A stretch of 62,999 bases of DNA, taken from positions 121,305,541 to 121,368,539 of the forward strand of contig NC_068984.1 in the NCBI RefSeq assembly GCF_001194135.2, given 5' to 3'. The notes under the pieces were generated by a model that was not told where the DNA came from, ran no database searches, and saw nothing but the letters and a program-made list of their open reading frames with translations. This DNA comes from Octopus bimaculoides. Taxonomy: Eukaryota. Of this stretch, positions 57,801 to 60,800 are shown in pieces (position 1 is the stretch's first letter; each line of letters starts with the position of its first letter). The translations under genes and the position numbers were made by a program.

Positions 57801-60800
57801 CTCCTCCAGTTGAAACCTCAGTACATTGTGTTCCAAAGTTTAGATTTTATACAGTATACACACATGCACACATGCGTGTGTTTAAAGATATATGTGTGTG
57901 TATGTGTGTATGTACGTATACATTTATATGCATGTATATATTTATAATACGTGTGTATATATTACAGACACATATGAATTATAATATATATCATATACAA
58001 ACTTCAACATAAAACAATATCATGAAAATCTATATAATTATGCATCAAAATAGAAATAACATTTGGAGAGCGTGGATTTTCTGTGACAGATGTACGCTAG
58101 TGTGGTTCCGATAGCGCTGCTGGAAGAAGGGGGCGGAATTTGGCTTTGGATTGAGGTTTTGGGGATGTTAGATTGGTTAATGGCTTGGTTGTGTTGTGAG
58201 GGGAAAGGAAGAGAGGAAAGTATACGTACATGTATGTGTGTGTGCGCGCGCGCCCACTTAGATGGAGACAGACGTGAGGGGTTACAGGGATGTATATGGT
58301 TGAAATGTCAGCCTGTGGTCTGCGTAGGTATCGGTGGTTAGAATCCCTGTCCTTGATTGTTGGTTAGCTAGAGTTGAGGTGCAGTCAATGTTAAGGTGGT
58401 ATATCTGGGTTGTCGGCGGCTAGTGGTTTGAAGTTCAACAGGAGAGTGTACCACTTATGGCAGCAATAAGATGCTTCGTATTTCCTCTTGATAGATACAA
58501 TAGGCTGGTAGAGAATATGCAATCTTTCTTAGGGACAGAGCTGGCAATTTCAGGCAGCAGGTGAGGAATGTGGGGGGTTTCATTCCGAAGGTCACGAAGT
58601 ATCCTAGGAAACGAGACGAAAAGATGGAATTCTCTCTACTCCTGCATCTAAGCGAATGCATATGTCATGTGTACCTTCCTTTGAAGTTGCTGGCAGTCAC
58701 GCCTGTGTCGTGCCTTGTGATACCATCGGATGGTGTATGAGGATGGCTCTTTAGTCTACAGTCCTTGAGAAACAGGATATATATAGTGTGATGGGGCTGA
58801 TAGAAAGAAGGAAAGAATGAAAGAATAGAAAGAATAATAGAGTCGTACAAAATTTAGATATATATGTATATACTTACATATAAGAGGCCAAAGTGTACGT
58901 ACATATATAAATTTATATATAAATATATAAATTTTGTACGACTCTCTTATTCTTTCATTCTTTCCTTCTTTCTATCAGCCCCTTCACACTTGCTTCGTTC
59001 ATTTCACTCTTCGTTCTTTCGTTCCCCCTCTCTCACATTTCCTGGCCTTCTCTTCATGCTCACCTTCCCTCCTCTTTCGCTTCACTCTGTCCCTTTCATT
59101 TTTTTCTCGTCCCTCCTTAATTCTTCTATCCCTCTACCTCTACCTCTCTCTCTTCTCTCCGCACGTGACCGGTGTTCACCAGGCCTGACCTTTCTTTCTT
59201 GGTTCGACTACCATCCGTGCAACATCTATATTCCTCCCTGTGCCTGTCAAATCTTATGTCCCTGCCGTAAGGCTTTATTTCCACACATGCCAGCTTAATT
59301 TAATTCGTCCTTAGTCGAAAGACACCCGTTGTTAATGTCCTGTTATTTGTATTTGTGTACCATTTCACCGTTTTTTTCCGTCCTTGTTTTCGTTTACATT
59401 CGCTGCTTTCTTCCAAGGAATCTGGTGCTCTTAGGTTAGTTTTTCCTTGGGGCTGGCCAGATTGGAGCAATCTCGAGTATAACCAACCGAAATTGCAAAG
59501 ATAATCTGGAACTCGACTGAAGAAAGAAAACTCCGAATGACTTCTCCTTGTTTTCTTTGTATCGTCTGTCTGGANNNNNNNNNNNNNNNNNNNNNNNNNN
59601 NNNNNNNNNNNNNNNNNNNNNNNNNNNNNNNNNNNNNNNNNNNNNNNNNNNNNNNNNNNNNNNNNNNNNNNNNNNNNNNNNNNNNNNNNNNNNNNNNNNN
59701 NNNNNNNNNNNNNNNNNNNNNNNNNNNNNNNNNNNNNNNNNNNNNNNNNNNNNNNNNNNNNNNNNNNNNNNNNNNNNNNNNNNNNNNNNNNNNNNNNNTT
59801 TAGCCTTCATTAGATATTTCGATGAAAGCTAAACAGGTAAGAACTTCGAAGTCACTGTGAACACTATTTTTTTTTTAATCATAAACGTGTACACGCGTGC
59901 ACCCACAGACAGACAGACAGACAGACAGACAGACAGACAGACAGATAGATAGATAGATAGATAGATAGATAGATAGATAGATAGATTCATTCATTCATTC
60001 TTTCTTTCATTCTTTCTCTGCAGTGCTACGACGGTTACGCACGTCTTCTCTTTGGTTCCTGACCAATAAAACTTTATATGCACATACATCCGCATATACA
60101 CTATTACTGCTACTACTGCTGCTGCTGCTGCTGCTGCTGCTGCTGCTACCGTACATACACAATGTCACAAAACTGTAGTTTCCTTAGAGCTATTTTTGAT
60201 ATATTTGTGACATCGAAGCTAGATTTATACAAATGTGTAGTTCAACTCTTTGCCTGTAATATTCGGTAGAGTTCAACTTGTGTGTGTGTGTGTGTCTGTG
60301 TGTGTGTGTGTGTGTGTGTGTGTATGTGTGTTAATAATGTACTGCAAGGGTTGTTTTTTTTCTTTCTTAATGTACTGAAAAAATGTTTCCTATTTTAATA
60401 ATCATACAATTTAATCTTACGGTGAGAAATACACACCGATTTTTCAGTTCTCTGAAGTTAATTCTCATATGAACACATTCAAATATTCAAAAGACATATG
60501 AGTGTTATCGTGTGTCAATGTAATTTTATTTATATCGCTTTTCTAAGGCTCTAGAAGACTCTAAAAGATCGTGTTTCCTCTCACATATGTGTTTATATTT
60601 AGCACAGTAATTTAGACACCTATGTGACAAGAAGCATTTAAATGTAGTACTGTCTGTATTTAAATGTATTACACACTGACACTGAATACATGTATACGAT
60701 TTCAAAAGTAAAGGAATTAACTTGACTAGTTTCTAGTCTTGTTGGACCTTTTTGCAGAACCGCTAAGTTACGGGGACGTAAACACACCAGCATCGGTTGT

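Follow-up and report, generated by a model that had tools for sequence, protein, structure and literature searches.

Unannotated duplicates derived from exons have been catalogued in the introns and untranslated regions (UTRs) of animal genes, and some of them are alternative terminal exons (Ivanov & Pervouchine 2022, PMC9013439); an exon-duplication survey from 2002 is cited there. In Drosophila pip, the duplicated terminal exons are mutually exclusive, complete, in frame, and expressed (PMC9013439). Here we describe a duplicate of terminal-exon material in intron 2 of an SLC45A4-like gene of Octopus bimaculoides, a sugar-transporter gene of the major facilitator superfamily. The gene lies in a stretch of 62,999 nucleotides of chromosome sequence (GCA_001194135.2, CM046604.1), hereafter the window, and all positions are counted from its first letter unless another locus is named. 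The window is identical to the database locus over an overlap of 43.6 kb. The element at 60015-60269 is a same-strand copy of 61981-62275, the end of the gene's own last exon, and is about 73% identical to it. We consider it probable that this copy is a pseudo-exon remnant: a piece of the terminal exon that has no function and is decaying neutrally.

The octopus copy resembles the catalogued exon-derived duplicates in its same-strand intronic homology to a neighboring exon, in its inclusion of UTR sequence, and in being unannotated. It differs from them in comprising the last 47 coding nucleotides plus UTR and not a whole exon with both boundaries, in having no detectable larger duplicated unit around it, and in being known from sequence alone. 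As in pip, terminal-exon material was born by duplication, but the octopus copy keeps only about 15 former codons, and these are read in a different frame. It also shares several properties with pseudo-exons, or cryptic exons: an acceptor-like AG behind a pyrimidine tract, a short frame, processing signals, and neutral evolution within a long intron. Classical pseudo-exons, however, have an acceptor and a donor, whereas the octopus copy would be a terminal exon, with an acceptor and a polyadenylation (poly(A)) signal, and it descends in part from a real exon.

The best local alignment joins 60015-60172 with 61981-62150 at 73.5% identity over 170 columns, and the similarity continues to 60269 and 62275, respectively. 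With microsatellites removed, the alignment score was 90, compared with 18.9 ± 2.2 in 500 dinucleotide-preserving shuffles (z of about 32). The coding part alone gave z = 10.5 against shuffles, and the 3′ extension alone (60173-60269 versus 62151-62275) gave z = 9.6. The duplicated piece is about 255 to 295 bp long and takes in the coding end of exon 3 with its TGA and some 245 nt of the 3′ UTR. Only the last 47 of 231 coding nucleotides were copied, so this is not a whole-exon duplicate with its own splice sites, as mutually exclusive duplicated exons would be. The two stop codons are 1,967 bp apart. Downstream of them, the 19-mer ATAAAACTTTATATGCACA is identical in copy and parent, and a (CTG)n array at 60107-60147 of the copy corresponds in place to (ACT)n in the parent. 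On the 5′ side, (GACA)n and (GATA)n at 59907-59986 precede an array of period 12, so that a chain of repeats spans 59907-60017; at its 3′ end, the copy runs into GGTAG and then (GT)n. No similarity to exon 3, or to the intron before it, was detected in the unique sequence at 59799-59900 (z = -0.4). The features of the copy and its parent are as follows.

59985-60017, plus strand: pyrimidine-rich microsatellite of period 12, ATTCTTTCTTTC, found by Tandem Repeats Finder, without homology to the exon
60015-60062, plus strand: copy of the last 47 coding nucleotides with the homologous TGA (60060-60062), carrying a 1-nt deletion relative to the parent
60022-60023, plus strand: acceptor-like AG, from a G-to-A change in former codons (CTGCGGA to CTGCAGT), also present in O. 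sinensis
60024-60062, plus strand: hypothetical 12-codon tail, valid only if this AG is used from the exon 2 donor; frame not conserved in O. sinensis
60063-60269, plus strand: copy of the proximal 3′ UTR, with AATAAA at 60065-60070 and the shared 19-mer at 60066-60084
61981-62275, plus strand: parent segment, comprising the last part of the real terminal exon (TGA 62027-62029) and the proximal 3′ UTR, 95% identical to O. sinensis

A first-pass annotation of the window had described a collinear, diverged copy of the exon end and 3′ UTR about 1.97 kb upstream of the stop, with an old-frame reading that resembles the real exon end, a homologous TGA, and an identical 19-mer. All of these are present, and the duplication withstands the comparison with shuffled controls that had been proposed as its refutation. 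The extent given at the time, 60008-60269, is right at its end; its start has to move to 60015, where homology begins, since the letters before that point belong to the microsatellite. It had further been claimed that no open reading frame (ORF) or repeat call accounts for the structure. This agrees with our ORF and tandem-repeat listings, none of which shows the copy; the ORFs over it on both strands are short, microsatellite-driven frames only. An Rfam scan of 58000-62999 returned only sub-threshold matches, on low-complexity palindromes.

The host gene was modeled with three exons encoding 626 amino acids, 100% identical to the O. bimaculoides SLC45A4 database protein (P0001).

29359-30829: exon 1 of the three-exon gene model
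50384-50559, plus strand: exon 2, phase 0 at its 3′ end, with donor GTGAGT from 50560
61796-62029, plus strand: coding part of the real exon 3, 77 codons and the stop (TGA 62027-62029), the model being 100% identical to P0001

Hydropathy peaks at residues 572-590 and 600-618 mark the last two hydrophobic segments. Both are encoded by exon 3, and its loss would therefore remove the last two membrane segments, in keeping with the earlier statement that a protein without exon 3 lacks transmembrane segments 11 and 12 (TM11-12). Neither AATAAA nor ATTAAA was found in the 970 nt past the real stop (62030-62999); so either the transcript ends past the last letter of the window or its signal is non-canonical. 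At exon 2, an (ATT)n array of about 180 bp (approximately 50200-50380) abuts the acceptor (TTATTGCAG) and replaces the normal pyrimidine tract, an arrangement that is also found in O. sinensis.

We then asked how the copy arose and whether it is genuine. It sits on a 1,665-bp contig between two runs of N, which the first-pass annotation had not mentioned; such a setting would fit a misplaced contig or an uncollapsed haplotype.

59575-59798: assembly gap of 224 N, directly upstream of the contig carrying the copy
61464-61473: second assembly gap, of 10 N

An identity of 73% to the parent is far below allelic similarity, however, and throughout intron 2 the window and the gapless O. sinensis locus (L001) are collinear, with the copy-bearing contig in the same order and orientation. 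The orthologous copy lies at L001:54110-54370, in intron 2, about 3 kb upstream of exon 3. We rejected an assembly artefact or haplotig on the strength of these two observations and give it next to no credence. In BLAST searches of the 63-kb window and the 81-kb O. sinensis locus, copy and parent each found a single partner, namely each other, and all further matches were microsatellites. Judged by these searches, the copy is not a dispersed repeat at the scale of the two loci, and at that scale an origin as a dispersed repeat or short interspersed nuclear element (SINE) was set aside. Intron 2 of Argonauta hians (2.35 kb) yielded no copy, in non-coding sequence that is too diverged for sure recognition of a neutral one. 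A search with the exon 3 peptide for further octopod loci returned no close Octopus contigs.

The age of the duplication was estimated from 186 aligned non-microsatellite columns. The Kimura two-parameter distance is 0.33 to 0.37 from copy to parent, compared with 0.062 from copy to copy and 0.044 from parent to parent between O. bimaculoides and O. sinensis. The copy-parent distance is thus about five times the interspecies distance, and the duplication is therefore roughly five times older than the species split. Each copy is nearer to the copy of the other species than to its own parent, so no gene conversion has homogenized the pair since the duplication. These sequence distances demonstrate a duplication well before O. 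bimaculoides and O. sinensis separated.

A local duplication at the DNA level appears to be the simplest reading of its origin. A larger tandem duplication unit was rejected, as the sequence upstream of the copy has no homology to the interval between copy and parent in either species. So was a 5′-truncated retrocopy: the 3′ end of the copy lacks an A-tract, and the parent UTR reaches far past the copied portion, with neither AATAAA nor ATTAAA over more than 970 nt after the stop. The spliced-junction criterion for processed pseudogenes is inapplicable, because the copy falls within a single exon. Alternatively, a mobile element may have captured or transduced gene sequence and delivered the fragment, in place of a simple local duplication. 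Microsatellites on both flanks of the copy would fit such carriage, as would the abundance of SINE-like repeats in the intron and a conserved hairpin upstream with, in O. sinensis, a (TA)n-centred palindrome upstream of the hairpin. We nevertheless consider it decidedly unlikely: neither the flanking unique sequence nor the fragment has a second copy in the 63 kb and 81 kb, the copy lacks a poly(A) tail, its parent is the long 3′ UTR without a poly(A) hexamer, and no target-site duplications or element termini were seen, although no systematic search for these was made. The hairpin itself, at 59800-59834 just upstream of the copy's microsatellites, has an 11-bp stem (TTAGCCTTCAT...ATGAAGGCTAA) and is conserved in O. 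sinensis; it may be the end of a mobile element. The palindrome is located at L001:53684-53878, and the corresponding sequence falls inside the gap of the O. bimaculoides assembly.

At the level of motifs, the copy contains an acceptor, a stop, and a poly(A) signal in compatible phase. The change of GGA to AGT, as had been pointed out, produces the TGCAG acceptor motif at 60023 (CTGCGGA to CTGCAGT). From 60024, a phase-0 reading of 12 residues matches the exon 2 donor at 50559 and ends at the TGA, for a predicted isoform of 561 amino acids, and AATAAA stands at 60065-60070 where the real exon has CATAAA; in each of these details the first-pass annotation was accurate. Of the 18 bases before the CAG, 16 are pyrimidines (0.89, versus 0.78 and 0.67 at the two real acceptors), so the tract that had been noted before the acceptor motif is there. 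The claim that old codons were reused as splice signals holds for the AG alone, as the pyrimidine tract belongs to the microsatellite at the breakpoint (59985-60017). Within its 11.2 kb, intron 2 has 13 poly(A) hexamers (AATAAA or ATTAAA) and 11 YAG sites that are preceded by at least 77% pyrimidines. These numbers predict about 1.8 chance pairings of an acceptor-like site with a poly(A) signal no more than 150 nt away, and 1 is observed.

Comparison of O. bimaculoides with O. sinensis gave the following substitution identities.

60024-60062, putative coding part: 0.923, with an indel of 2 nt in addition
Entire copy, microsatellites excluded: 0.933
Intron 2 elsewhere, ten single-copy blocks: 0.90 to 0.95
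Real exon 3 and UTR: 0.963

The constraint on the copy is thus not above the intronic background and falls short of that on the real exon and its UTR. This comparison demonstrates that the copy has evolved at the intron rate since the duplication. The 2-nt indel shifts the frame, and the shared TGA is therefore out of frame in O. sinensis, where reading from the same AG gives 15 residues and stops at the TAA within AATAAA. Consequently, a 1-nt deletion does bring the frame back to the shared TGA in O. bimaculoides, as proposed earlier, but the proposal does not extend to O. sinensis. Similarly, conservation in this second octopod, which had been suggested as a check, is found for the AG and the AATAAA and not for the frame or use of the TGA. 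The sharing of these two motifs appears to carry no weight, since a divergence of about 7% leaves eight bases unchanged about 56% of the time. An alternative junction that had been put forward, from a donor at 59836, is likewise unsupported by the comparison: the GT of O. bimaculoides is GC in O. sinensis.

Annotated proteins offer one comparable isoform. The 90%-identity cluster around the SLC45A4-like protein contains one O. bimaculoides protein (626 aa), O. sinensis isoforms X1 (626 aa) and X2 (557 aa), an O. vulgaris protein (670 aa), and a Logan-derived ORF (491 aa). Isoform X2 (XP_036357760.1) ends in HYHTTGQ followed by HSAYSSLN; it is truncated at the phase-0 exon 2 boundary and lacks TM11-12. 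X2 therefore resembles the hypothetical product of the copy in gene family, in a phase-0 junction after exon 2, in the loss of the last two membrane segments, and in a short new tail. In contrast to the copy, its terminal exon is annotated and lies 19 kb downstream of exon 3 (L001:76399-76425), with a T-rich acceptor and an AATAAA 140 to 160 nt later, and is unrelated in sequence. The copy was accordingly rejected as the source of the tail HSAYSSLN, which was found neither in the window nor, in O. bimaculoides, within 10 kb downstream, a stretch interrupted by an N gap of 1.6 kb. The O. sinensis annotation leaves the copy unused although the AG, pyrimidine tract, and AATAAA are there, and no annotated isoform uses it in either species. 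A profile of exon 2 with the hypothetical tails of both species found no protein covering the tail, but missed known full-length octopus proteins too; likewise, the exact 561-aa isoform was not in a collection of 15 billion sequences, in a look-up of low power. The Logan ORF (P0124), from another octopus, ends in KKFSK and a stop and consists of exon 1 continuing into intron 1 through the donor (window 30829-30840). It probably comes from genomic or unspliced sequence and is not a real isoform.

Two functional explanations have to be weighed against decay. In the one originally proposed, the copy is under selection as an alternative terminal exon or as a polyadenylation site within the intron, with splicing from exon 2 to 60024 and a transcript end after the AATAAA; it would yield a 561-aa isoform with 10 transmembrane segments or reduce, as a switch, the amount of full-length transporter made. 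The motif set is what such an exon would need: TGCAG behind a rich pyrimidine tract, a phase-0 fit to the donor of exon 2, a reading of 12 codons up to the stop, and AATAAA 3 nt further on. Several observations tell in the same direction and weigh against simple decay. This is the only strong acceptor-like site in intron 2 with a stop and AATAAA within 150 nt, and the richest in pyrimidines of those with both nearby; the AG, pyrimidine tract, and AATAAA are all kept in O. sinensis, as is a short open frame that stops within 15 codons in both species; truncation at this very exon 2 boundary is annotated in O. sinensis, so that isoforms without TM11-12 are predicted; and protein-database look-ups for the tail have little power to find it. 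Duplicated terminal exons also serve as alternatives elsewhere, pip among them (PMC9013439). Set against this, divergence between the species is at the neutral rate and includes a frame-shifting indel, and chance alone would supply nearly two such configurations in the intron. The truncated isoform of O. sinensis is annotated with a different exon, the copy being ignored despite the same motifs; no catalogued protein carries the predicted tail, within the power of those look-ups; and Argonauta has no copy. The terminal exon would also measure just 65 to 75 nt or so, which is unusually short. On balance, a selected exon seems very unlikely, and none of the tests made here supports one.

Somewhat less improbable, although still unlikely, is an unselected copy with low-level splicing, in which a cryptic pseudo-exon or a poly(A) site within the intron would yield rare, truncated noise transcripts. 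The good quality of the motifs speaks for such use, and a neutral rate is compatible with it; on the other hand, most intronic sites of comparable motif quality go unused, as pseudo-exons. Decay of a non-functional fragment remains the probable reading, and the sequence of events would run as follows. Through a local DNA duplication, intron 2 acquired, on the same strand, some 255 to 295 bp from the 3′ end of the terminal exon of the SLC45A4-like gene. The copy then changed at the background rate of the intron and gained frame-shifting indels. We infer that none of the three signals (acceptor-like site, short open frame, AATAAA) is selected; they would be by-products of the flanking pyrimidine-rich microsatellite, the single G-to-A change, and a change of CACATAAA to CCAATAAA. 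The spliceosome may occasionally use the site as a cryptic intronic terminal exon, and nothing points to selection or regulation.

Other repeats were observed in the neighborhood. A 257-bp inverted duplication, 90% identical between its arms at 60454-60717 and 61193-61432, encloses a SINE-like repeat at 60750-61040. This SINE-like repeat has at least 10 copies in the O. sinensis locus and also occurs at 25636-25912 and 52302-52852 of the window. The arm of the inverted duplication is single in O. sinensis (L001:54985-55234), and the duplication reflects either a rearrangement confined to O. bimaculoides or faulty assembly close to the 10-N gap. At L001:56557-56939 lies a repeat of about 382 bp that recurs at at least 10 other L001 sites with 92 to 98% identity and is probably a young SINE family. 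Intron 2 is longer in O. sinensis (18.7 kb, versus 11.2 kb in O. bimaculoides) in good part because of insertions of this repeat. An AT-rich palindrome at 58828-58956 gave sub-threshold matches to several unrelated microRNA models on both strands (27 to 31 bits, versus gathering thresholds of 76 to 101), which are probably chance matches on low-complexity sequence.

As it stands, the copy has little significance, being one more exon-derived fragment that is apparently decaying in an intron. It may deserve a note in the annotation and could be useful as a dated marker for a duplication common to O. bimaculoides and O. sinensis. Even if it were used, the type of event would not be new, since exon duplication, intronic polyadenylation, and alternative terminal exons are all established, and the same gene already has another annotated route to truncation in the sister species. 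Use in RNA, if shown, would make it a cephalopod example of a terminal exon derived from a duplicated exon fragment, its splice signals made out of former codons. We hold it to be a long shot, on the motifs described, that in Octopus the duplicated fragment became a working short terminal exon in which a codon turned into an acceptor and a mutated UTR hexamer into a poly(A) signal. Were this so, the transporter would have gained a lineage-specific truncation to 10 membrane segments, or a throttle on its expression, beside the distal truncating exon of O. sinensis.

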